A stretch of DNA of 63,967 nt, the filler included, from Pelomyxa schiedti (taxonomy: Eukaryota; Protista; Evosea): the NCBI GenBank assembly GCA_020536535.1. It is 11 parts of 11 records of this genome, joined end to end, with 100 filler letters (N's around TTAATTAATTAA, not from the genome) between each part and the next. Parts side by side here need not be neighbours in the genome. Positions count along the whole stretch, not along the records: positions 5,652 to 21,304 come from JAHLWZ010001153.1; 10 more parts are not named here. One strand, 5' to 3'. Every line of letters starts with the position of its first letter. Position 1 is the first letter of the stretch. Below are positions 5,652 to 21,304 of the stretch, in pieces. The notes under the pieces are model-generated. The model worked only from the letters and a program-made list of their open reading frames with translations, did no database searches and was not told where the DNA came from. The position numbers were made by a program, and so were the translations under genes.

Positions 5652-6962
5652 AATCATGCCAGATGGATGGCAGCTTCTGGAACAACAGCAGGACCGCTTT
5701 GCCTTGGGTGGGATCACTGCAGCCGCCACAGCAATAGGCGGGAGCCCCACCCACTCCCACACCCTCAATGGATCCACTCAGCCTGATGGTGGCCACTCTC
5801 ACGGAAGCTTCGATGGCAGTTTTGGAGTGTACGACGGCTGGGGCCGCGGAGGGCGCCCCGCGTTCGGAATCATTGACAGGAACGGCAGGAATGCGCCTTC
5901 ACTCCGCACGAGTGGTCCCGATGGAATTCACACTCACACCTTTGCCGCCACCACATCCACGGTGAGCAACATCCCTGACTTCATCAAGTTGCCATTTATC
6001 GCATCCAACAGGGACAAGACAAGTGAGTGACAACTCTCCCAATCCTCCTTTTATTCTCACTGACTTTTTTCACAGTGATTCCCGAGAGAGCGATCATTGC
6101 ATGCAGAACCGATTCATTGAACAGGCCCGGGTGGTTATTGTGTGATGGGCAGAATGGAACTCCTGACCTTCGTGACCGATTCGTGCGTGGAAGCAACACC
6201 GGGTTTGGAGAAACCGGTGCAGCCAGTTCCACAACCCACAAGCATGACTGGAGCGCCACAACATCTACCGATGGTAATCACTGCCACACGAGCCTCGGTG
6301 ATTCCGGGTGCTACAAGCGCAACGTGGACAACGGCGGCCTCACTGCCATAGACACGAACGGGCGTGACGTCCCCACGTTGAACACATCGTCAAATGTGGT
6401 CCACAACCACGGCCTGACCGGCTCCACTCAAGTGGCGCCGCCGCTCCCGCCGTTCTGGTCAGTTGCATACTTCATGAGGCAGCCAGGGGCCGGGCCCATC
6501 CACTGCCTGGATGACCTCCCAGAAGGCGTGATCCTCATGTTCCAGGGCGCCCCTGAGGCTATTCCACGCGGCTGGGCCCTGTGCGACGGCAAGGACGGGA
6601 GGCTGAACCTCGTGGGGAGGTTCCTGCGCGGGAGCTCCGCCGCCGCCAGGCCCGACTGCCCAGGGGGCGCCGACGCGACCGTGCACGCCCACGCGGTGGA
6701 CGAGACGAGGATGGTGGGGAGTGGGCAGCACTCGCACAACACGTTCGACCCTGGGTACGGGGTCTACATGAGGAAGATCGTGGGAGGGGACCACCGCGGC
6801 ATCAGCGTGATAGACGCCAACGGCAAAAACCCGGCGGCGTTCGTCACCACCGCGGACGGAGTGCACGGCCACGCCGTCACTGGAGTCAAGACCGCCGAGG
6901 CTGATTCGATGCCCCCGTTCTTCGCCATTCTCTTCCTTCAAAGAACACCCCAGCAGCCGTAG
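5652..6962 (+). CDS. Protein of three tandem phage tail-collar/fibre-tip repeats; 5' truncated by contig edge; one intron at 6023-6075
   Basis: Repeats of P.GW.LCDG..G..DL..RF.RG followed by three HxH motifs and PPF. The intron GTGAGT...CTGAC...CACAG joins ORFs 5656 and 6027 in frame. Confidence 0.85.
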
Positions 6963-7302
6963 TTGTTGTTCACCAAGCACAGGCGCTGTTGTTTGCGATT
7001 CAACACCAACACACTAACAGCTGTTCTGAATTTAAAATCAAATGAAATAATTTGTCGATGTTTTCTACCTGACTCCACTCCAGCACCGTCCAACGACCAT
7101 CGGATCGGGGTATCGCCACTTACGCTCGTACGGGTTAATCTGGGAAGACATTTTGTTTACAAGTCTGTAAGGAGTTCTGGCAAATGTCAAGTAACGACCT
7201 TGAGACCGTACACCCTGTGTCCGAAACATCACCCCGTTTTCAGGGAAGGTTCTTGGAAGAGAACAGTTTTAATATTTCAGAAGCGGTTAATAGTGATTTA
7301 TT

Positions 7303-10300
7303 GTGATGGAAGTTGTTGGGTGTTTTGTGTATCGACCAGACACGCGCGTTGTCCTCGCGTCCCTTGTCAACCAGAAATCAAGCCTCGTCGTGCCCAGAGA
7401 GGCCTCATTCTTCGCCCTATGTTCCTCAGCACTCCTCGACTCTCCCATAATACCCCGCGGGGAGCCGTGCACCGTCGACACTGCCCAGCCGTCGCCGTCA
7501 CCAAAGCGGCACGGCTCCGACTTTTACCAGGCGGTCAAACAGACCATGTCGCTGGGCACCGAATCCCCGTCGAGCACAGTCGCCGAGATCCCGTGGGAAT
7601 CTCTGTCCGCGATCGGCGTCCCTCCCCGCGACGTTTTCTTCGTGGCCGCGGCCGTCCCCTTTGACCCGCCGATTTCGTCCGGCGAGCACGGCCCACTTTG
7701 GGTTGGTGTCGTATCTACGAGGCCGGTCGCTGGCGGCTTACGCGAAGCGGAGCGGGACTCTCTGGTAGTCAGGAGTGTGCTCTATGCGGGGAGATTTGAG
7801 CTCCAAGTTGAACTCATTCCTACTACTACAGAGATGGTATTCAGCATTTGGGTTACAAAAACACAAACCTAAATTTAAAAAATACTCAAAAAATAGAGCT
7901 CTGAAAAAGTTGCGTTCAGTGACCACGTCTAGTGGGCATTGTTCTACTTCTCTTACAATACTCTCTAGAGCTATCCTGCCAATGTGCGGCATTTAATGGA
8001 AGTATTTGTAAATCAGCTGACAATTGATGAAGAAGAGGGAGTGAGGCAGGAAGAAATGTGTGGCTTATTCCATGAAGAAAACCGAATTCCACTTGTTTCA
8101 GTGCAGGTCGAGGTAGAAATTTTAGATTTCATTGCCAAGGTATTTTCACTCAAGGAGCGTGCACTGACAGTAACCACCTGTAGGTTAATCTAAGGCACAC
8201 CTACGTTAATCATGGCGCAACCCATCCTATTGAATGCATTTTCTTTTTCCCACTGAGTGACAAATCCACAATATGCAAGTAGGTAATTTCGATTTCGTAA
8301 TGTCTTACAATTGACCAAATAAAGGTTCTTTGTTGTTGTTGGAGGCAATACCATCAACGGAGTTTTAGAAGAGAAAGGGAAAGCAGAAAACGTGTATAGT
8401 GATGCCATTTCCTCGGGACATAGTGCCTTTTTAATCGAATACATCAGTGAAGGTAAAGTGTGCTGCTCCTAAGTTTCTGTCACTGATTCTCTTCAAAAGA
8501 TCTGTTCAAAGCAAGTATCGGCAACCTCGCTCCAAAAGAGGAAGTTGTTGTAAACATAACATATCTTTGTGAGCTAGGTACTGGCAAGAATAATTCCGTT
8601 TTTCATCTCCCAACCTCATACACACCGAAATATCAGACAGCATTCTCCCCACCTGAAGAGCCATCAACCTCCTCAGTGTGCGACTATATCGTCACCATGG
8701 CAGTCACAATACAGAATAGCACGCCTATTACTGGATTGAGTTGCCCCAATCTATCTGATACAAAAATTTCCAAACATATAAATGGTTGTACTGCAACGCT
8801 CACAGCAAGGTTATCTCCAGGTGACCTCGCACATGACTTCACATTGTTGATTGCTCAAGACAATGTGACAACCCCAAGAATCTTAATTGAGCGTGATACA
8901 GTGAATGTAAATTCTCTGGCCGTAATGATAACCCTCCAGCCAAGCATTGTAACCTCTACTGTCAATTCCGAGATTATTTTCATTGGTACCATGAACTAAT
9001 TATTTATTCAACAAAGGCTGAGTTCTCACTTTAACCAAAAAACAAAAAAAGTTGACCAATCTGGAAGTATGCTTAATACAATTTACTATGTTTCCCGGGC
9101 TTTGATACACTTTCTCTCGATTTTACCACCGGAATGCATGTTTAACATCATTGGATTTGGAACTACATGGGGGAGTTTATTTCCCAACAGTGTGTTTGCC
9201 ACTTCTGAGAACCTTGTGGCGGCAAAGAGGCATGTGCACTCCCTAGCAGCCTCTCTTGGCGGCACAAATATATTGGAACCACTGAAGCATGCCCTTGGCT
9301 CGGCTCCAATTGAAAATTACAGCAGACAGATAATACTTTTCACTGACGGTGCTGTTGATAATACCCAAGAGGTTTGCGAGTGTGTGAGACAGAATTGCGG
9401 GGATTCCAGAGTGTTTGCGTTTGGTTTAGGTGCCGGCGTCTCCAGAAGTTTGGTAAGAGGAATTGCGTATGCCGGGCATGGACAAGCTGAATTCATTGCA
9501 CGTTCCTCTGATATAGAGAGTTCTGTCGAAGCTCAGTTAAGTCGGGCTCTGGAATCTGCCCACACACAAGTCTCTGTCAGATGGGATGGGGACCATCCCT
9601 TGTGGACAGCACCAGCACATATTCCAGCTCTGTTCAACAATTCCAAGGTTGTTCTGTATGGAGTTTTTGCAAAGTCTCTTCCACTATCTGGAACAGCGAC
9701 AGTATCAGCAAGAGGCACCAATACAAGCAAACCAATTGAGTGTATGATCAACTTCGGAGGTCTTTTATTTGGGTTTTTTTATTATTTCGAAACTAACGTA
9801 TCACAGAGTCAACACCGCTTACAAGTTGTATCATTCACGCCTTGGCAGCAAAAGAGCGTATATGTGACCTAGAATTCCAAGGAGAGAGTGCAAAGGAGCA
9901 AGTTATCGCCATTTCTAAGCAATATAGCATTCTATCGAAATACACTTCGTTTGTATGCATATCGAAGCGTACCTCGGCAGTCACTACATCTATGCAAACG
10001 CATCACATTCCAGTTGCAAAGCCAACATCAACGTACGGGCTCGCCGGACTTGTTTCCTACTTACTCTTCCAGGGCTATAACAGGTTGCGTTTGTTGGAGA
10101 GCTGCCTCTATTGTATACAAGAAAAATGAGCTCCTTCTTGACTTTAATGAGCATGTGATTGTGCAAATATCACCTGCGAACATTGCCAAGTGCAGTGAAG
10201 TTTGGCTCGGTACCACTAAATAAGCTCACAAAATCAAATGTAAGGTCTGTGGAAATGTTGTGGCAACTTCTCGTCTGTCTTATTTCCCTGAAGTCAAAAT

Positions 10301-11001
10301 GGCATTAGCTGGAGGTGAACTTGGAACTGCTTTCCTCTCTGAATCAAATTCCACCCACCAGTGTGTAAGGTGGCGCAATGTAGTGCCAGGAGCACCAGTG
10401 TTTAACTTTGAATTTACCCCGCCGGATGGAAAGTTTGAACTGATGACTTATCACCTTACCCCACCACCAACTCACCCTCTCCCAGTGAATGCCTCTCTTG
10501 TCTGGCAGCCTGTCAATAGGTTCACCATTAAAATCAAAGCACACATTACAACCGGCACATGCTCAGCGCTCTCCACTGCAACCAACAAGCCAACACCGAA
10601 GGGGATAACTCTGGTTCTTACTGTTCCGGGATGCATTTCTGTTCCCTGTAAGTCACGTCATTCCGATGGAACTGTTGCATTGGATGCCGGGAATCAATGC
10701 GTACATTGGATACTCAAATCGGCAGCCTGGAACCATTCCTACTCCAGTGAGTTCACTGTTGACATTGCCGAGGAAATACATTCCCTTCCTCCAGCCGAAG
10801 TAAACTTCACAGTGAGCATTCCACCCCTCCCGTAATTCGTTATTTCCACTGACAGGTTTCTCACAGATAAGCCAGTGGCTCTTCACCGGAGTTCACGTTC
10901 AACAAATTGACGTGATAGGAAAAGGCCTTGAAAAAGTGACCAAAATGGCTCGGTTTGAAACCACAGTCACAATCCACCTCCCTTGCACCAAGGCCACTTA
11001 A
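7303..11001 (+). CDS. Multi-exon fusion: unknown N-terminal domain + VIT + VWA (VWA5A-like) + mu homology domain
   Basis: VIT: HPIECIFFFPL..GVLEEKGKAENVYSDAISSGHSAFLIE..FKASIGNLAP. VWA: IIFIVDQSGSM, LGGTNI, ILFTDG, VFAFGLG. VWA5A tail: SKQYSILSKYTSFVCI. MHD: SYFPEVKMAL, HQCVRW, FTPPDGKFELMTY, VHWIL, VNFTISQWLFTGVHV. Confidence 0.75.
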
Positions 11002-11057
11002 TTCGTAATCAAAATTTTCATTACGTCCTTTTTTTTTTTATCAGAATTTGGTACCAA

Positions 11058-11910
11058 ATGACTGCCACTGAAGTACCACGACCGAAATTGGACGAAGAGA
11101 CGTTCAATAAAGTAGTAAAACTGCTTCGACGACCCACAATTACAATGTGTTAAGAGCGTCTTCAACCCTGTTTAAGCCTGTTTGCTTTTCGTCGAGCTTT
11201 CAATCGTAGTGTAGGTTTGTGACTTTGTGGAATGTGAAACGGACGAAGAATGTAGAGACTTTTTACAAAAGAACCCATATTTAATACAACAACCTGTTGT
11301 GCAAGCCTTGTTTGAAAGAGGTTGTTCCCAGCTCCATCCCTACAAAACGAAACAATTGGTCAAAGATATGAATGTATTTGATATTTGATCCGTAAGTCAC
11401 TAACACAAAATTTCCTTCCCTCCTTATTTGTATCTTCTCAAATTGGACCTTTCAATGCAATAGCGTTTGTAACGTTTCCGACTCACCCTCGTGAATTTCC
11501 AAGGAGATTTTTGAGGAACGGTCAAATGCTCAAATGGATGTTAGATCTTCAAGCTGCTACGGGAGGCCAACAAGACATCACTCTCTTCTTTCACAGGTTC
11601 GTGAAAAACCAATAAAAATATTCTGGTCTAATGTAATCCCGTTTGTTGCGGCAGGCTCATGAGTCCCGATCCTTCTTTCAGGACTTGGTTCGAGTCACAA
11701 GTAGATGACTTAATGGCCGGTATCTCAATCTCGATTCGCACCCTTGTTCCATTCACCATTTCACACCAAAACAGCACTAGAAAGAAAGCACAAGACTCCC
11801 AAACAAACAACCCAGTGTGCAACTCATCGTTCCTAGAATCTTGCCTAGCCTGTGGTGTGGTCCCACACCGTACCTCCAAAAGATCCAAAAAACATTTCTC
11901 CGAAATCTGA
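11058..11910 (+). CDS. Cdc37 middle (Hsp90-binding)-domain-like protein, multi-exon (3' end approximate)
   Basis: ECRDFLQKNPYLIQQPVVQALF...GQMLKWMLDLQAATGGQQDITLFFHR.LMSPDPSFRTWFESQVDDL aligns by eye to the Cdc37 M domain (SQKYLSDNVHLV...QFILELAK...FRQFFTKI). Confidence 0.5.
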
Positions 11911-12033
11911 TCAGACCACCCAACAACCCCGATCGAGGTTCGTCAAAGTCAAACAAACGCACAGGGAAACACCGGAATTCGCACCGGTAGCCAAACACAA
12001 AACACCGAAACACAAACAACCAAACAAACAACG

Positions 12034-12713
12034 GTGACATCGCCATCTCCCATAATGATGCTGGGTTCGGTGGGCTTGGGGCGATTATGCGCGGCGGACG
12101 GGAGCGGCTTCGGGTGGTGCGCGTGGTGGTGGGTGTGCTGCGTGGCAGGAAGCGCATTATGGGCCACCATAGCCACGATTGGCAAGCCCGCGGTAGTTCT
12201 CGCCGTGACTGCCTTTCACGTGGTTCTACACGTTCTTCTGTTGTGGCTCCGAATGCCCTTCTGGCAATGTACTTTTCACTTAAATTTCATTTTTTTAAAA
12301 AAAAAAAATTAAGTTGCCGTGTATAATAATAGGAGGAACACAAGCTCCGCATCCTAGTACAAATAAAAACAAAACCCTCGGAATAACAAACAACAAGAAA
12401 TCGGATTGGGATTTGGGGATGTCTTCTACCTATTTAGATTGTGTTTTTTGTCTTTTCTTTTCCCCCTCTGCTTGTCGTGATTTTCGTTTTTCCTCCAATA
12501 GATGTGGAACATTGGTACTTGACAACCCTGAGTGCATTTACATTCACTTGGTTACTAAGCGTCTTCTGGACAAGGCAGCCCCTATCTAAAAGAACTCTGT
12601 TCATTGCGAACAAGGACACCAACGTGCACGCCTCTGCTATAACCACCAGCCTCATTTATGCCATAGTTGGTGCTCTTGTATACACATTTGCCTGGCTGTT
12701 TGGATGGTGGTGA
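12034..12713 (+). CDS. Small multi-pass membrane protein with weak PIG-F/Gpi11 resemblance
   Basis: Hydrophobic exons FHVVLHVLLLWLRMPFW, LPCIIIGG, YLTTLSAFTFTWL and SLIYAIVGALVY. The PIG-F PLDW motif is absent. Confidence 0.35.
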
Positions 12714-12907
12714 TTGCACAACCCACTCACAAAATCCCCAACAACACACCCCCTTTGACCTTGATTTGGTTCATTGACCAAAGTACAAACCTACACCTAC
12801 ACTTATGCTGATTTCAACAAACCAAGCAAACCCCCAAACCACACCAAGTTTCTTAATTTCTTCTTGTTCCTAGTAGATAACAGATCCGTGTGTAAATAGA
12901 CTCCGTC

Positions 12908-14227
12908 ATGATGCAACAGCAGCCCGGAGTTGGTGGCGTGGTTGGTGTTGTGCCTGCGCAGTACCAACAAATGCCCGTGTCTCACCACATCCAAATGCAG
13001 CCAGGCCCAGGCGTCGGCGGAGGGGGCGTGCCTCCCTCCATTATGGGAGCGGCGCAACCACCCCCGCCCCAACCCGTTATGGCCCTCCAACAACAACAAA
13101 TGCAAGCCCAACAACAGCAACAACAACAGCAGATGCAACAAATGCTGGCACAACAACAACAGATGGCACAAATGCAGACACAACAACAACAGCAGCAACA
13201 GCAACAGTCAGCAGGGTATCCTGGTGTGGTTATGGGACAACAACAACAACAACAAATGCAACAGGCACCGCAGTCACAGCCACAGCAGGTCACTTATGTG
13301 GCTCAGATGCAGCAGCAACAGCCTGCCTCGATGCAACAGGTTATCCAACAGGGGAATTCCGCTGCCCAGGCACAACAACAACAAATGCAGCAGCTGCAAC
13401 AGCAGCAGCAAGGGCAACAGCAAACACAGCCGCAGACACAGCAACAACAATATGTCAATGTGGGTGGGCAGGCACAACAGCTAAAGCAGGACACCCAAAT
13501 GAAACAAGAAATGGTGGGAGGGGCACCTCAAATTAGACAAGAAACAACACCTTGGAACCAGCAGCAACTCCAGCACCATCAACAGCAACAAATGATGCAA
13601 CAACAACAACTTATCCAACAGCAACAGCAACAACAACAGCAACAACAGCAGCAACAAGTAATAGCCCAGCAACAGCAACAGCAACAACAACAGCAGCTGG
13701 TAATGGCGCAGCAGCAACCACTAGATCCACTCTCAGCCAGGACACTGGCAGTAAAGGCATCACTGTTCAACTGTGTGAAGTCCGTATACCTGTGCCTAAG
13801 TGACACCCCCGGCGGCGGCGGCGGCGGCGCGGGCGCGGGGGGCTCCTCGCCGTCGCCGATGGTGGGGGGCGTCGGCTCCCCGACCGCGGCGGCGGCGGCC
13901 ACTTTCCCGCAGTACCACCACCCGGCGTACCCGTCGAACCCGCCGACGCAGGACCTGATGGCCAGCGTCGCTAGGTTCGACCTGGGCTGCGACAACCTGT
14001 ACCAGCTGTTCAACACGCTCAAGATACTGACGCCGCAGAGGGCGCAGAAGCTGGAGGAGACCAGGCTGGGGTTCGAGGCACTGGCCAATGACATGCACTC
14101 GTTTGCTGCGTCCCTGGCTTCCCCTGATGAGCAGCTGCAACAACAACCTGGCTCTGGGGGGCTGTCTGGGGCTGTGTCTTCTGCCTCTGTGGTAGTACCG
14201 CACACTACAGCAGACAGAAAGTCCTGA
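12908..14227 (+). CDS. Poly-glutamine protein with a short helical C-terminal domain (possible Mediator tail subunit, Med29-like)
   Basis: Single 439-aa ORF with CAA/CAG runs. C-terminus LDPLSARTLAVKASLFNCVK...ARFDLGCDNLYQLFNTL. Confidence 0.7.
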   Translation: MMQQQPGVGGVVGVVPAQYQQMPVSHHIQMQPGPGVGGGGVPPSIMGAAQPPPPQPVMALQQQQMQAQQQQQQQQMQQMLAQQQQMAQMQTQQQQQQQQQSAGYPGVVMGQQQQQQMQQAPQSQPQQVTYVAQMQQQQPASMQQVIQQGNSAAQAQQQQMQQLQQQQQGQQQTQPQTQQQQYVNVGGQAQQLKQDTQMKQEMVGGAPQIRQETTPWNQQQLQHHQQQQMMQQQQLIQQQQQQQQQQQQQQVIAQQQQQQQQQQLVMAQQQPLDPLSARTLAVKASLFNCVKSVYLCLSDTPGGGGGGAGAGGSSPSPMVGGVGSPTAAAAATFPQYHHPAYPSNPPTQDLMASVARFDLGCDNLYQLFNTLKILTPQRAQKLEETRLGFEALANDMHSFAASLASPDEQLQQQPGSGGLSGAVSSASVVVPHTTADRKS

Positions 14228-14419
14228 GAAAAAAAAACCCTTTGTTTCGGTTATTGTGTCCGGGCGTCGGAGCTCATCTCCGCAACATCTCCTCAGTTCT
14301 TAGGTGAAGTCATCAGAGCTCACTGTAGTTCCGTGGCCATCGGGCAAAAAACAGAGGAGCCTTTGGCAGCGGAAGTGGACTTCCTGTGGGGCGTTATGGG
14401 ATGACTTTTTTTAAAAAAT

Positions 14420-17058
14420 ATGCAGTTTGGAGGCAGGCTTGGAGCTGGTGGTGGCGTGCGGTGGAGGCAACACAATCTCAGGTACTTCAAGATCAAGAGA
14501 GTACTCTCTCGTATCAAGGCAGCTTACTCGTCGTCGGGCGTCTCGATGGCATCGTCGGCGGGCATGAGGCTCTCGTCCGCGTGCCGTCCCATAATGGACA
14601 CCACCCCGTTGGACGTTGTCGAGGAAGAGGAGTGGGGGAGGAGGCCTTCCCACAATCGTGGGACGCGAGGGAGTGAAGTCGACCAAATTGGGGGCAACAA
14701 GGACGCGTTCTGGAGGTTGGTGCGCGAGGATGTGAGGACTGTGAATACTTTCTTTGAGGGAATGTGTGCTGATGCCGCTGCCAAGGTTGGTGTTCGCTGT
14801 TGTGTACAACATCATTAATTATGGGTGTACTATTCCAAAACCACCAGGTTATGCACCAAAGGAAACTTCAGGATAACACTCAAATGATTGAGGCATATGA
14901 AGAGCTGTTGCACTTGAAAGATTACGTTTCATTGAATGTTGAGGGATTTAGGAAAGTTCTCAAGAAGGTATTTTTTTTTTTTTTGATTCTTTGTCTTTCT
15001 AAGCAACAATGATCATCAGTATGACCACATAACTGGAGAAACCTGGGGCGCACAATTCATTGAGTCTCTGAAGAAACAGCCTTTTTATTCTTGTCAGCAC
15101 GTAAATACTCTGATTTCTGAACTGGAGGCCCTGAGATCACCGGAATTCTTTGCCGTTGTGAAGATCGAACCCACCAGTCAAACTAAAGTTGACAAGCTGT
15201 TCCAATCAAGTCATTTCATATAATATGTTTCAGGTGCATTTGGTCACGCCGTGGATAAGACTCCTACTTCTGGCTCTCTCATGCGGCCTTGGAATACTGG
15301 CGTTCTTCACCCCTTTCGAAAATGTAACTTCAGTCTCCGTCTACCAAGCACGGATATGTTTTTCCATGTTCATTTTCGTGTCTTCTCTGTGGGTGTGTTA
15401 TATATGCATGACATTCTGCAAGCTAATAAGTGCTTTTTTTATTTCAGGTCACACATGCATGCCCACTGTTTGTTGCAGGACTTCTTGTCCCTGTTCTCGT
15501 TGTTGTACTTGGACTCAAGTTTGACCCGCATGTTCCCCAAAATCATCCCGACGCAGGCAGTCACTCCTTCTTGTACTTGTACAGCTTGGTGAGGGAAAGT
15601 CCTACCGGCAGTGATGACCAAGTTTCCATGCTTGCCAGGGAGGTGCTGGGTTCGTTGTTCAACAACGTCAGCATGCTGTTGCTCAGCAGTTATGCCCTTT
15701 CTGCTTGTTTGAGGTGCACCCGCTCTGCAATTTCTTGACCACCTCCTTTTTGATAGTTGTAATACTCAATGTACATTGACAGCCGGTGCCAAATTGAACG
15801 GGACATATGTTACAAACTGCATCAGCGACTGGAAAATCACCCAAGACTTTTCCTCCTCGGTGTTATGATAGTCTCTACTTTCATATCGTTTTGGACGAAC
15901 AATGTACACCTGATTGACTCTGATTGGAGAAGTGGGAATTTCAATTTTCTTTTGCTTAATCAAGTTTCACTGATGTGAGCCCTGCAGGTCACAGGGTCAA
16001 CTTTAATGGTGGCCACTCTAATGCCACTACTGCGGGAGCTTCCAACAACATCCACCTACGCTCGCGGTCTCCTTTTGGGGGTTTCATTTGGTTGCAATCT
16101 GGGTGGAATGATCACACCTGTTTCTTCACCACAAAATGTAATTGCCGTCATGGCTCTTCAACTGCAGCAAGGCCAACACCGCGAGTTGCTTCAATTTGGC
16201 AGCTGGGTGCTTGTTGCCACGCCATGTGCCTTCGTTCTCTGCGGTGTATGTTGGATTTCACTGGTTCTGGCATTCCCTCCAGATGTGAACCGGTTGCCTG
16301 CCTTCATAACCACGGCGAAGACCTCTCAAGGAAAATTTCAGAGCAAGACCACTCTTGCTCTTTGCGCTACACTGGCTGCGGTTACCGTGACTATTTGGCT
16401 CTGTGACTCACTTGTAAATCCCTTTCTAGGTGGTTCCGCTATTGCTGGCTTGGCTTTCACTGCACTTGTTTTTGGAGTCGGCGTTCTGACTCAAGCTGAT
16501 TTAAATTCCTTCTCCTGGCATATAATACTTCTTATTGGCTCAGCAAATGTGCTGTACTGTGCTCTGGCTTCAAATGGAATTCTATCCTCTGCAGATGAAT
16601 TCCTCAGCGGGATACTAACAACCAGCCGCTTTGGGACTGTCTCTCTAGTTACGTTGCTATCCCTGCTTATGACCCTATTCAGCGCAATTGCATCACACAC
16701 GTCCGCGGCACTTGTCCTCATGCCCTTTGTTGCTGCTGTTGAATTGAAGCAATGCCGGCGGTGCACACAATCTCACGCGGCGGAATCACTGGAATCATTG
16801 ATAGCGCTACCGGCAACAGCACCAACTTCACCACCCCTGATGTGGGGATGCACACGGGCTGTGTTCGTGGCTGCAATGGCAAACAGCTGCGCGATGTCAT
16901 TCCCGTGGGTTTCATTCCCAAACATGAGCTCATACACGGTGGTGGATGACATTGGGAGGAAATACTTGCGCACTAAGGACTTCATCTTTGTTGGTGGGGT
17001 TGTTTCTTGTCTTGCCAGTATGTTTGTTGCCCTGTACTGCTACTTGGTGTTGCTGTAG
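14420..17058 (+). CDS. SPX-domain SLC13/CitMHS-type phosphate transporter (Pho87/90/91-like)
   Basis: SPX: MQFGGRL..W...LRYFKIKR and LKDYVSLNVEGFRKVLKK|YDH. Transporter: GVSFGCNLGGMITPVSSPQNVIA, SHTSAALVLMP, SCAMSFPWVSFPN. Confidence 0.92.
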
Positions 17059-17281
17059 ACCAGAAAAAGTGATACAATCTCGCTAAAAAAAACTATTTTT
17101 GGCGCACACTGTTGCGGGAAATCCCCAGGGGTATTCCTTGGCGGTTTCATCACCAAGATGTGGTGCACACTCACCCAAGATTATGGGAAGTTACCTTGGT
17201 TGCTCACCACTTCAAAATAAAACAAAATTGGAAAACAGGTTTGATCAGCATTTTTTGAAAATTGTGGTAACACAAGTCGTA

Positions 17282-18582
17282 TCAGTGTCCAAGGAGGTCC
17301 TTGATGTGAGCAATGGAAAGTGCAGGATTGAGTTTTTTGGGGCACGCTGGTGTACAGTTCAGGACTGTGTGGCATTTGAAGACTGTTTGTATGATATGTG
17401 TGTAAGTGGTGACAGTTGTTTTGAAAGAAAAGAGCCACCTTTGAAGTTATCTGTGTCCAATTCTGCAAGTCGTTGTTTCCTTTTGCTGTCTCTTGAGTCT
17501 GATATCCACCGGTAAGCCTCAAGACATTTGGGTCAGTATTCCATGCATGTGTGGTGTGGTACTACCTGTTGAAGAACACTTGGGCCAAGGTAACGTTTGT
17601 CACCACCCTCAGACCACCAAAAGCTTGGGCATGATGTGGAGCAGCACGCACACAGTATGCACTCGTACAGACTGTCGAGGCGCTTGCGCTGCTCTGGACT
17701 CTGTGGAATCTATTGTGTATTGCACAAATGATGATGAGTGCGACATTTGCGACATTTTTCATGAGGAAAAAGGAACTAAAGGTAACAGAAGGTTACCTCT
17801 GTTTTCAAAGCTTGTTGCTCAGGTGTAAGCTCCAGCCACGGCTTGATAGATTTCAAGTGTTTGTAGAATCCGGACATGTCCGTCACCAAATCCTGCGTTG
17901 ATTACCGTGAAAAGAGAAAAATATATTTGAGGTGGTTGTGGGATCACACTCACCCTTATGACAGGCATGTGTGGCAGTGGTTTGATATTCACAACACCGT
18001 TCTTTGTGCAGTCAGAAAGTTTTGTGATGCAGGCCAGTCCATTCGTCCCGCTGTCACATTAGTTATTAGATTCAACATACAAAATGTAACCAAACAAATA
18101 AAACAGGGGGAAAAAAAAAAAAACACCCTAACAATCAAACAAAAAACAAAAGGGGAAACACCAACAATAACACCCCTGACACCCAACCAAAATGATAACA
18201 ACAGCAACAAACAACTACGATAAACCCAAGATATGAACTTGATGTTCACCGCACATGATCCACAAATCCCCTCGCGGCAGCTTCGGCGAAACGACAGCGT
18301 GGGGTCGACCGTCTTCTTCACGTGCATCAGCGCGTCCAACAACATCGGCCCCCCGCACTCGTCTGGGTCCACTACGTAGTTGGACGCGGTGGCGCGCACG
18401 CGGTTATGGGAGGAGGTGGTGGTGGTGGTGGAGGTGTCCGGCTGCGGTTGCTGTTGTTGGTGGGATCTGAAAACCCTGAGAGTCACTGGCAGTGTCTGTT
18501 CGCGACACGAAACGTGCATGAACCGCCACACAGACGACGTAATCAACCGGTTGGTGTCGATGTGCCCCACGGTGCCCAGCAT
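17282..18582 (-). CDS. SDHB: Succinate dehydrogenase/fumarate reductase iron-sulfur subunit
   Basis: [19 protein letters not shown]|..[15 protein letters not shown]|[41 protein letters not shown]. All three Fe-S motifs are present across introns. Confidence 0.97.
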
Positions 18583-18724
18583 CTTTTTTTTTTTCCTTGT
18601 TCTCCGAAATCACCCGACATACTTGAACGTCGCAGTGACGAGGCCTCGCCAAAAAAGCTAAAAAAAGCCAACACAAAGTGTATGGACAACTAGCAGTTAT
18701 TTGGCTTCTCAAAAAAAAAAAAGC

Positions 18725-20329
18725 CTAAGAATTGAATGTTGTGAATGCCTGCCAAGATTTGCTCCAGAATGCCTTGAGAATTGTGACCTGTTCATTGCTT
18801 TCTGGGGGCAGGAACAGAGATGCATGTTTTGCCGTGACAAGAATGGGCTGACTGTGGGATGTTGTCCTCCTCAAACGATTTATCTGAATGACATCTCCCT
18901 TCCTCAGGAGGTTGGTGATAGACTCAGTGGCCAGCCAGTCCCTCAACTCTATGCCTAGAACCATGCCCGAATTGTCAGCCAGATAAAGCATCCTGGGTAA
19001 AAAAAAGTTAAGCACAGCCTAGAAGGCAGGACAGCAAAAAGAATAACCTTTTTGTCTCTTCCATCCGACGTCCCCTATTGTCGGTATACTTCAGACGCTC
19101 CACAGGTGTCAAACAAACCACAATGCCCATAATGCCTGCAAGCCGATTCCCCAAGTGAGTGTTGTTGTTATAATTTTGGACTCATACGGTGTAGGGTGCC
19201 TTCAGCTAGATTGTGCAGTGGACCTATACGACTCACTGGCCAGGGTTTAAGTATTCCATTGTAAAGCCTAGAAATTTGGCTAGCCGGGGTCAACTTAATG
19301 TCCGCTGGGGCCTGAGGTGTTCGCTCCCGCTCTGCGCAAGGAGCAAGAGAGAAACAGGAAATCAGAAACACCTATGGTAGGGGTAGAATAGGCTGAGGCT
19401 GCGTTGGTGCATACATCTCCTGGCCAGAACTCATTCATCATCGGAACAGTATCCTCAAACCCGACAATCCTGACTGTAGTGCCCTGCGTCAGTGTTACTC
19501 CGAACATGTGAAGTAGGGAAACTGTACCTCACAATCTACAGCCAGTGTAGAGCACATTCCCCCTGCTCTTCCTTTTCTTGTTGTGAAGCTTTGATATCTA
19601 TTCATCTCCGTTATTTGAAGTTGCACATGCTGCTCTCTGGTGTTAGTGCCACTATTCAAAGATCTGACGGCTAGCTGAAGAGTGCCTAGTTCCATTTTAC
19701 TGCTTTTACTGGGAGGAAAACCGGCCGCCACAAAGTGGACCCTTTTCACCAGGAGAATGGAATTCCTTTTTATTGTAAGAGAAGTAAAAGAAAAAAAAAA
19801 AAGAAAAAGAAAGCGAAATAGCACACCCATTATTGAGATGGGACATGATCCCCTCTTTGCACCGGGAGAGCTTAAACCAATACCCTCGCTGAAGCATGAC
19901 TTCACTACGCACATAGCAGAATCGAGTCTCCTCCTCATTACAGAAGACACAGTTCCACACCCTCGGACTGTCAGTGGGCTCGATGGAGATAAGGGCCATT
20001 GGCTTCGGGATGTGAACACGGCGGAACTGGTAAATAGCACCGTCCGCACCCTTAAGGACAATGGGTGCCGACACAGGCGCCTGCTTGTCCGACACGTCGG
20101 CAAAGCTCTCAAGGTCAATGTCGAAATCGCACTGAAAGTCGCACGAAATGTCGGAGCACAATTCAGGCGGTGCGTCCGATACAAAACCAGGAGGCTGAGG
20201 CGATATTTGTTGCTCAATTGGGGGTGGTGCAGGTTGGGGCACGGGGACCAACAACGGCGTGACAACGTGTGGGTCCGCGTGTGGCTGGGCGACGAGAGAC
20301 AGCGGGTCGGTTGCGTTCCCTGACTTCAT
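18725..20329 (-). CDS. Divergent RPA1 (RPA70)-like OB-fold protein with DBD-F, DBD-A and DBD-B but no visible DBD-C
   Basis: F: PMALISIEP..RVWNC..HLNNGNSILLVKRV. A: QITEMNRYQSFTTRKGRAG..LAVDCE.TTVRIVGFEDTV. B: GIMGIV..TK|RMLYLADNSG..LFLPPESNEQVTILKAFW. Confidence 0.7.
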
Positions 20330-20612
20330 TTCGGTGGCAACGTGACGATACGCAGAGGTGAAAACTTTTCAAAATTGTCTCCGTTTTACTCAGATCTGGT
20401 TTTTCAATTGAAGACGTGAAACCGGTTCCGAACAATTGAAACCTTCTCGCCTTCGCCGAGATTAAACCACACGTAATTTTCAAACTACGCACAATAGCCA
20501 CACCGGCACACGAAAAGCTAGGTACACACCCACTGCCCCACAAACGATTTTTCTCAGTTCGCCACGCTACAGGTACCAAAACCCGCAAAAAGACTTCCGT
20601 TTTTTCGTGTTT

Positions 20613-20898
20613 ACTTTGCCTCATGCACGATTTAATCCAGACTTTCCTTCCCCCGATTGTTGTGGAATCCAGACTTTGCCTCATGCACGATTTTTTGGTG
20701 CTTTCTTTTCCCCCTTCCTGAGACCTTTGCACATGGTATTACAGCTACTCCTCCCTTCCCTTTTGCCATTCGTTTATCACTTACCAACTCTTCTCCCCAA
20801 TAAAATACAGTTTTGGTTTGTTGTACTGTTCTTTTCTTCCCGACTTTGTTGCGCAAATCCAGACTTTGTTGGCCTTATTATTACCAACTCTTCTCCCC
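20613..20898. repeat. Cluster of short interleaved direct repeats
   Basis: ACTTTGCCTCATGCACGATTT at 20613 and 20673; AATCCAGACTTT at 20634, 20666 and 20856; TTACCAACTCTTCTCCCC at 20781 and 20881. Confidence 0.9.
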
Positions 20899-21304
20899 TT
20901 AGACTGACTCTTTTTCACCCTTTGGTGCTCCTATTTGCCTTGGGAGGTATGTTCCCTCCTTCCACTGTGCCCTGCCTTTAAATCCTCTTCAGTTTTACAG
21001 TGGTGAATAACCCGGCTCTGCAGCTTCATATACTTCCTGTCGTCTCATTTTTTTGGCACAATGTGACGTCCCCTCCCAAATAACAACCTCTAAGCTGGAT
21101 CTCCTGATTCAAAAAGTTGATGTACTGACCGACCTTGTGCAACATTTACCCCAAGTCCACAAAATGTCCAGCTGCAACCACCTCAATTTTTATTTTTCAC
21201 ACAAGAAACAGCTCCACGGTCCCGAAGGGGCACGAAAGGCGGAGACGACGCAGGCGTGTGGGTCGCGGTGGTTGCTCCAGTTATGGGTGACTTACTGCCG
21301 CTTT

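Follow-up and report, generated by a model that had tools for sequence, protein, structure and literature searches.

What is a gene built from three phage fibre tips doing in the nuclear genome of an amoeba, and can one chain stand in for three? Phage fibre tips are the textbook obligate homotrimer, and the question is raised by the gene at positions 5652-7100 of the stretch of DNA from the anaerobic amoeba Pelomyxa schiedti analysed here (63,967 nucleotides (nt), filler included, from assembly GCA_020536535.1; hereafter the window). Positions 5652-21304 of the window are contig C1153 of this 52-Mb, 5337-contig assembly, and 5652-7100 is the 3' two-thirds of the nuclear gene Pelo_16606, whose 5' part is lost at the contig edge. 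We are highly confident that this is an expressed amoeba gene of phage or bacterial fibre-tip ancestry with three co-linear repeats. Less firmly, we favour a model in which a single chain supplies all three subunits of the tip.

Three fibre-tip repeats in one chain

The 3' part of Pelo_16606 at 5652-6962 comprises two exons and three repeats of ~140 amino acids (aa). The spliced frame joins 5656-6022 to 6076-6962 over a 53-nt intron and yields a 417-aa product, P0001, that is 100% identical to the NCBI entry 'hypothetical protein Pelo_16606 [Pelomyxa schiedti]'. At 5656 the ATG encodes a Met within the protein rather than the true start, as a paralogue reads ..NPIMPDGW.. there. The features of the gene are as follows.

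5652..6022, + strand: exon 1, repeat 1 (aa 1-122 of P0001); 5' end cut by the contig edge
5752..5937, + strand: putative metal-site region of repeat 1, with HSH at 5752-5760, HSH at 5794-5802 and HTH at 5929-5937
5872-5889, + strand: IDRNGR, which like GVY is Pelomyxa-specific and lies between HxH motifs of repeat 1
6023..6075, + strand: spliceosomal intron, 53 nt, GTGAGT..CACAG, phase 1, 42% GC, from the sequence and the contig joint 6022>6076
6076..6512, + strand: repeat 2 (aa 123-268), from the repeat model and motif positions
from 6126, + strand: collar start of repeat 2, RPGWLLCDGQNGTPDLRDRF
6237-6410, + strand: motifs of repeat 2, HKH 6237-6245, HCH 6279-6287, IDTNGR 6348-6365 and HNH 6402-6410
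from 6444, + strand: closing LPPF strand of repeat 2
6513..6962, + strand: repeat 3 (aa 269-417; 6513-6959) and TAG stop codon (6960-6962)
within repeat 3, + strand: collar start IPRGWALCDGKDGRLNL, the sole stretch that reaches the Pfam Collar model
6684-6872, + strand: motifs of repeat 3, HAH 6684-6692, HSH 6729-6737, IDANGK 6810-6827 and HGH 6864-6872
from 6909, + strand: closing MPPF strand of repeat 3
6963..7100, + strand: 3' untranslated region, 42% GC; run X3 has no depth from 7101 on, its cDNA-like contigs stopping at ~7068

Three tandem repeats with three HxH motifs each had been described in the initial annotation, and both points were recovered here. A hidden Markov model (HMM) built from single repeats, together with the motif positions, places exactly three contiguous full-length domains in P0001 (residues 1-120, 124-260 and 270-414; 53-98 bits), and nine HxH motifs were located in them. 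The genome also holds a paralogue on contig C233 (85% identity), another on contig C1315 (53% identity; product P0002) and remnants, so that Pelo_16606 belongs to a set of three or more intact paralogues; the same HMM finds three domains in P0002, and the C233 copy also has three and no more. Across the six repeats of P0001 and P0002 all 18 HxH motifs are in register and invariant, as are the GW at the start, G.Y, D.NG and the closing P. The three repeats within the chain are 30-37% alike, and repeat 1 lacks a CDG..NGTPDL segment, unlike the other repeats. The closing PxF, previously taken for a helix, is instead a beta-strand in the predicted models of both P0001 and P0002. Assignment to Pfam Collar is marginal and depends on the sequence submitted: with a cutoff of 24 bits, the exon-2 product reaches 24.5, whereas whole P0001 (23.7) and P0002 (22.7) both fall just short, and the match is limited to profile positions 1-21 of 57 and to repeat 3.

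Kinship with phage tail-fibre tip and collar proteins is nevertheless well founded in sequence matches and phage gene contexts; structural comparison points the same way, at weak Z and on repeat 3 alone. Searches with P0001 returned 893 matches with word indexing and 6031 exhaustively, with 376 at E<=1e-10. The nearest proteins from outside Pelomyxa are ~30-40% identical and all derive from metagenomes, and just four matches, the query included, reach E<=1e-30. Proteins P0003 to P0013 (E 7e-26 to 3e-15) are annotated PF07484/PF21939 (Collar/Gp10_C), the PDB tail fibre 9qgo matches at E 1e-6, and many sequence relatives carry the name microcystin-dependent protein. Four relatives (P0164, P0010, P0191 and P0177) lie in phage tail modules, where the collar gene follows those for tape measure and Dit and precedes Sipho_Gp37 and the holin and endolysin (lysis) genes. 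Among 48,161 chains compared by structure, the six best matches to the P0001 model are 6ov6 (Z 5.1 over 105 residues), 9nxk (4.5), 2xgf (4.3), 8on5, 8kec and 1ocy (3.6), all of them homotrimeric fibre tips; P0002 recovers these chains too, almost in that order (2xgf Z 4.1, 1ocy 3.4). The fibre-tip domain derives from the phage or bacterial gene pool, and the intron in its coding sequence is of host type.

A spliced and expressed host gene

A spliced, expressed eukaryotic gene had been proposed at the outset, and a spliced contig, the NCBI gene model and the neighbouring genes bear this out. We mapped Logan contigs from four runs of the genome's own study on 5652-7700. One of these runs, X3, has no library type recorded, and we treated it as cDNA because its depth is very uneven (13-470) and nothing maps past ~7100. 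A 347-nt X3 contig (depth 193) omits exactly 6023-6075, with at least 160 nt on each side; its 11 mismatches to the window copy match the C233 paralogue, so this exact 53-nt removal is seen directly for the sister copy. By extension it is expected for the window copy, whose splice sites are identical and whose spliced form is the NCBI gene model. A 53-nt spliceosomal intron is therefore present as first annotated, but it is not in-frame, since 53 is not a multiple of three: it lies in phase 1, splits a Met codon (A|TG) and, if retained, would bring a TGA into frame at 6028-6030. Transcription of the window copy itself is represented by zero-mismatch X3 contigs at 5743-5865, 6615-6943 and 6914-7068, and the declared single-cell RNA-Seq run X4 has a contig on 5652-5772 that reaches 911 nt further upstream. 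The intron of P0002 lies at the identical place and phase, and thus the intron is older than the paralogues.

The P. schiedti genome was assembled from whole-genome-amplified single cells with RNA scaffolding, and its genes carry 7.4 introns on average, nearly all GT-AG (PMC8887013). Amplified cells full of prokaryotes might yield a chimera in which prophage or endosymbiont repeats are fused to eukaryotic DNA by the assembly; C233 does have N-gaps with duplicated flanks, and the GC content at third codon positions (GC3) of the gene, which climbs along 5656-6959 from 0.64 in repeat 1 through 0.67 in repeat 2 to 0.85 in repeat 3, exceeds the 0.40-0.48 of three neighbouring genes. Yet the GT..AG intron is spliced out in a cDNA-like contig, a 53%-identical paralogue has its intron at the same site, three paralogous loci exist, one X1 DNA contig spans 5652-7081 with 5 mismatches and extends 737 nt upstream, and no prokaryotic relative exceeds ~40% identity. 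The other genes on contig C1153 are eukaryotic (VWA_3, an AP-complex mu-like domain, a CitMHS transporter and an SDHB-like exon), which also argues against contamination. A chimera is accordingly very improbable, and contamination is ruled out for practical purposes. We considered GC3 as a sign of recent transfer and rejected it, because the native SDHB-like exon is as GC-rich (0.79); composition is therefore silent on the age of the transfer.

Fibre-tip repeats often occur in threes

Is the three-in-one layout an invention of the amoeba, as the initial annotation supposed? It is not, since the layout is common in uncultured phages and also found in secreted bacterial proteins. Phage proteins of ~425 aa such as P0010 and P0164 are collinear with P0001 across all three repeats (residues 32-427 of P0164 against 2-412 of the query), and their first repeat likewise lacks CDG..NGTPDL; they differ in being only 21-26% identical, in that their repeats are not orthologous by position to those of Pelomyxa, and in belonging to siphophage tail modules. 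Larger and clustered forms also occur.

L024:8001-14069: P0121, a phage protein of 2022 aa with nine repeats in three blocks of three, ~130-aa spacers between blocks
L025:8001-13219: three adjoining genes of ~505 aa with three repeats each, including P0003, on a bacterial contig

The P0121 contig carries an SU10-type capsid gene and glycosyltransferases. P0003 has a signal-peptide-like start, and L025 is a cellular, non-phage, secreted use of the three-repeat design; its genes adjoin an ECF sigma factor and a WD40 Ser/Thr kinase. In deposited phage genomes (INPHARED) we found single-repeat matches only, none covering at least 80% of the query, and repeat 2 alone as query gave 13 matches with a best full-length identity of ~35% and no close single-repeat donor.

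Repeat numbers were counted in 147 relatives, the best matches of a length-unbiased search. Three repeats per protein are the commonest state (92 proteins), followed by two (38), one (6), six (3), four (2) and nine (1); five, seven and eight were not seen among the 147. A three-repeat query itself favours three-repeat matches, and for this reason we examined the neighbourhoods of two-repeat genes. In three of five such loci, the two-repeat gene abuts a one-repeat gene, as 2+1 in L020 and as 1+2 in L023 and L026.

L023:5440-6840, L026:1592-2964 and L020:5693-6978: one-repeat and two-repeat collar genes back to back in phage tail modules

A fourth locus, L027, runs into a contig edge and says nothing either way, and the fifth, L028, is taken up below. 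In addition, a distinct three-repeat gene lies at 8001-9287 of L020.

Possibly more than one origin of the triplication

A tree of single repeats separates the Pelomyxa repeats from their phage counterparts. The main phage family groups its repeats by position, and the six Pelomyxa repeats form a clade of their own (support 90/95). The approximately unbiased (AU) test rejects a clade of all first repeats (p 0.0235) and one of all third repeats (p 0.0027), and the pairing of R1 with R1 and so on that common descent of the triplication between Pelomyxa and phage would give was not recovered. The Pelomyxa repeats also have GVY/GCY and IDxNGR in common; IDxNGR occurs in one relative, P0053, and no relative examined has two or more GVY-type motifs. 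The separate clade indicates a triplication independent of the main phage family. Judged from these sequences, the triple layout arose more than once, or else the repeats were homogenised.

If the origins were indeed independent, this would argue for selection of the number three. The triplication could have taken place in an unsampled donor rather than in the amoeba. The order of events proposed in the initial annotation, with acquisition followed by intron gain and then triplication in the host, is compatible with these results but not established by them.

A probable metzincin protease in front of the repeats

The initial annotation suggested that more repeats might lie in the missing 5' end. 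The paralogues point instead to a metzincin zinc protease and a hydrophobic N-terminus as its most likely content. In C233 the frame runs on upstream of the apparent start Met (..NVVVLLWPPGTTNPIMPDGW..), which provides the first strand of repeat 1. Further upstream lies an exon pair with HEIGHILGWRHEH, an HExxHxxGxxH zinc site, then a SIMNHH Met-turn, and the zinc-site exon matches Pfam Matrixin PF00413 (26.3 bits against a cutoff of 24) and Peptidase_M57 PF12388 (21.5 against 21). Zinc site, Met-turn and HMM match are thus all present, on the paralogue only; a PDB sequence search with the metzincin exon gave E 0.25 or worse (fragilysin, stromelysin). Upstream of the metzincin, the C233 frame begins with Met and a 21-residue hydrophobic stretch. 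Two further loci carry related parts.

C1066 (L017:2-589), - strand: first-exon copy with Met, hydrophobic stretch VIGAVAAHAVAAIATAAVTVV and metzincin start; runs off the contig end
C476 (L018:1294-2292), + strand: metzincin paralogue (HELGHILGFRHEH, ..NSVMDY..) ending in a collar-like start, ..LIMPLWPLP..VPDGWELLEK.., then stop

The first-exon copy on C1066 is 97% identical to that of C233 and is probably the lost beginning of the window gene. The C233 model has ~837 coding nt upstream of the shared point, which fits the 911-nt upstream run of the X4 RNA contig with a short leader left over. Taken together, a metzincin domain in front of the window copy is likely. The predicted signal peptide has a partial counterpart: the hydrophobic N-terminal stretch is there in C233 and C1066, but it has no basic n-region.

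Metzincin domains occur at no fewer than eight other loci in the genome, with various C-termini, and the collar-like end of the C476 paralogue hints that the fusion of protease and collar is older than the three intact copies. The zinc motif is absent from all 267 non-Pelomyxa relatives examined. As far as sampled, then, the metzincin-collar fusion appears from sequence to be the amoeba's own. Among the matches listed at E<=1e-20 in the search with whole P0001, drawn from at most 8000 candidates, there was no annotated C233 product and no other eukaryote. C233 is interrupted as follows.

C233 (L006:468-567 and 1391-1490): two N runs with duplicated flanks

After the second gap, the opening letters of C233 are the same as those of contig C1153. 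Both gaps have the appearance of scaffolding artefacts at the border of a collapsed paralogue, and could account for the lack of a full-length C233 product among the proteins.

A proposed pseudo-trimer: one chain for three

In phage T4, the HxH motifs of three gp37 chains bind Fe ions on the axis of the needle, and those of gp12 bind Zn. The gp37 needle (2xgf) and gp12 (1ocy) resemble the Pelomyxa repeats in their collar-type start, HxH motifs and closing strand. In both T4 proteins three identical chains contribute one domain each, at the tips of long fibres, whereas Pelomyxa has three diverged copies per chain, no fibre shaft, a eukaryotic gene with an intron and, probably, a protease in front. 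The C24 protein of Bizionia argentinensis (6ov6), the best structural match to repeat 3 and also a sequence match, has one repeat per chain and was crystallised with three chains, compared with three in one in Pelomyxa. We propose that the three repeats of Pelo_16606 pack round a pseudo-threefold axis, each standing in for one of the identical chains from which a phage tip is made. There would be three HxH layers, each with six histidines coordinating a single metal ion.

The predicted models are consistent with such an arrangement. AlphaFold2 gave P0001 a mean predicted local distance difference test (pLDDT) score of 67.8 and a predicted template modelling (pTM) score of 0.65 from a 32-row alignment, and gave the complete paralogue P0002 a pLDDT of 74.2 and a pTM of 0.72 from 80 rows, with 177 residues at or above 90. 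In both models confidence is high at the collar starts, at the first two HxH motifs and at the closing strands. Since a quarter of the chain is unplaced, such pTM values suggest, indirectly, a fixed mutual arrangement of the three confident cores. A 309-aa phage cluster from the ESM Atlas can be superposed along 284 residues, which cover two repeats (TM score 0.73, normalised to its own length). When repeats 1-2 were docked against repeat 3 with ESMFold2, the interaction prediction score from aligned errors (ipSAE) was 0.45, against 0.00 for the best control, which amounts to 'weak support'; the runs agreed in at least 86% of contacts, with a partner pLDDT of at least 65. In calibration, 51 of 78 solved complexes passed the docking mark, compared with 2 of 108 mismatched pairs, and passes at or below 0.60 comprised 5 of the 78 solved complexes and all 4 passing mismatches.

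A precedent for the design comes from the virophage DSLV2, in whose tail three different collar/gp37-like polypeptides form a 1:1:1 tip that binds bacterial lipopolysaccharide (LPS) (PMC12724248). In DSLV2 these are three separate gene products, whereas in Pelomyxa and its phage relatives they are fused in one chain, and the likeness drawn here is one of design. We favour the pseudo-trimer because of the repeat counts, the split gene pairs, the apparently recurrent triplication, the in-register HxH motifs, the pTM values, the weak docking pass and this virophage precedent. The original proposal that one chain supplies all three subunits is thereby supported indirectly, and we hold an intramolecular pseudo-trimer with three predicted His6-metal sites to be moderately probable.

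Alternatively, three whole chains may run in parallel, with each repeat forming a homotrimeric knob, HxH layers formed between chains as in T4 gp37, and tandem repeats that merely lengthen the fibre. Every solved relative is a homotrimer (6ov6, 9nxk, 2xgf, 1ocy, 8on5 and 8kec), and the HxH middles are poorly modelled in the monomer. Two-repeat relatives are also frequent (38 of 147), so that three is not an absolute rule, and L028, where the two-repeat gene for P0244 on a bacterial contig has no one-repeat neighbour, is a counter-example to the split pairs. On the other hand, repeat numbers 5, 7 and 8 are absent while 3, 6 and 9 stand out, and some neighbouring genes are split 1+2 or 2+1. The first repeat is also set apart by its lack of CDG..NGTPDL, the monomer models reach pTM 0.65 and 0.72, and inter-repeat docking exceeds its best control, if weakly. 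We therefore consider parallel chains unlikely, and prefer the pseudo-trimer.

The proposed protein and its target

If it is built like the 85%-identical paralogue, the complete protein would be ~700 aa long, with an N-terminal hydrophobic signal or anchor, a metzincin zinc protease and the fibre-tip triplet in that order. It may be a secreted or membrane-anchored protease aimed by its phage-derived tip at a surface structure. As a whole, this explanation of a pseudo-trimeric tip on a metzincin protease aimed at a surface is the best we can offer, and we give it somewhat better than even chances.

Several results in addition to the two-repeat relatives weigh against it. The Pelomyxa-specific stretch between the second and third HxH falls below 50 pLDDT in every repeat; the three-fold packing and His-metal geometry are predictions judged from model scores. 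All structural matches have Z<=5.1 and cover repeat 3 only, and Foldseek against the PDB returned nothing at E<=0.001 (best E 4.5e-3). The docking value of 0.45 lies in the band where passes are more often wrong unless the contact was likely beforehand. Furthermore, the metzincin is read from a paralogue, the window copy itself having just the X1 and X4 upstream contigs and the C1066 fragment, and secretion is uncertain given the missing n-region and other metzincin paralogues that have no hydrophobic stretch at all.

The likeliest targets would be bacteria or archaea that serve the amoeba as food or live inside it. The vesicles of P. schiedti contain a clostridial bacterium, and its cytosol a deltaproteobacterium and a methanogen (PMC10579272); a microbial target is plausible in light of these endosymbionts, though they are not evidence for it. 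We put forward a microbial surface as the target only tentatively. The fold may instead have been turned to another job, as a lectin-like or docking domain for the amoeba's own glycocalyx, plant polysaccharide or protease substrates. In line with such a use, nothing in our analysis ties the tip to bacteria, the three-repeat proteins of L025 are secreted non-phage proteins encoded in bacterial chromosomes, the metzincin family is large here with its various C-termini, and polysaccharide is the reported food of P. schiedti (PMC10579272). The closest contexts of known role are, however, phage receptor-binding positions, and the virophage collar heterotrimers bind bacterial LPS (PMC12724248). We regard this other job as improbable, even more so than parallel chains.

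A further argument against a non-microbial job comes from the comparison of paralogues, in which fast change round the HxH motifs resembles specificity switching (in patches chosen post hoc). The window copy and C233 are 87% identical in amino acids, with a one-codon gap allowed, and their ratio of nonsynonymous to synonymous substitution rates (dN/dS) is 0.44 overall. Nearly all differences (51 of 55) fall in 107 codons round the HxH motifs, in like places in the three repeats, and the other 308 scaffold codons have a dN/dS of 0.068, so the gene is under constraint. Paralogues may thus differ in specificity through the fast-changing residues round HxH. A patch dN/dS of 1.26 was considered as positive selection and rejected, because the patches were chosen after the differences were seen.

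Pelo_16606 among known collar proteins

Our findings fit into a wider picture in which parts are familiar. The collar domain, a Collar-annotated eukaryotic protein in Plasmodiophora and lateral gene transfer into Archamoebae as an ordinary event were all already known. The Plasmodiophora protein is eukaryote-encoded, has 191 aa and no other domain listed; it has room for little more than one repeat, compared with three in Pelomyxa, and is likened to it by annotation alone. Collar proteins are also listed in virophages, with close homologues in the giant virus OLPV. Among bacterial relatives, microcystin-dependent (MdpB-like) proteins are similar to Pelo_16606 in that some have exactly three repeats (P0003 and its two neighbours); unlike it, they are not eukaryotic and carry no metzincin motif.

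What appear to be new are the single-chain triple as a recurrent design, its eukaryotic form with an intron and paralogues, and the metzincin fusion; our literature search turned up no paper on a collar of this kind, whether single-chain or pseudo-trimeric. Counts of 3, 6, 9 and 1+2 point to use of the design by phages, by bacteria and by an amoeba, several times independently. If the pseudo-trimer is correct, a single chain with all three subunits breaks the symmetry of the tip, and its faces and histidine layers could evolve separately. It would also be a compact monomeric binder, easy to engineer. Three-in-one-chain tips would then be a recurrent and so far undescribed phage strategy, with the 6- and 9-repeat proteins and the 1+2 pairs included.

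For the amoeba, the gene offers an example of a laterally acquired sequence that gained an intron, was duplicated and was fused to another domain. It is an expressed candidate for microbial-surface recognition, by means of a phage-derived module and a host-family protease, in an amoeba that harbours bacteria and a methanogen. The most far-reaching version of this idea, in which a domesticated phage tip forms a single-chain pseudo-trimer with three His6-metal sites and serves with the metzincin as a 'guided protease' for particular microbes, be they prey, parasites or symbionts, three-in-one tips being recurrent in phages, strikes us as doubtful.

Family remnant and other observations

One remnant of the family retains collar starts alone.

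C804:130758-130985 (L008:1500-1760), - strand: collar starts of repeats 2 and 3 (..YPGWLLCDGQNGTPD.., ..LPTGVILTFNGPPKEIPRGW..) without HxH bodies

A P-loop GTPase-like stretch (GNPGVGKRTLLN) lies in the same open frame as this remnant, and C804 contigs are also seen as loose ends at window positions 6129-6166 in the run mapping. Runs X5-X7, which are small and come from a second study, contain 6-10% of sampled words of 5652-7200, and may represent another Pelomyxa sample or a shared conserved part. Elsewhere in the window, a 439-aa open frame at 12908-14227 on the + strand is mostly poly-glutamine, and long antisense frames arise from the same simple repeat.

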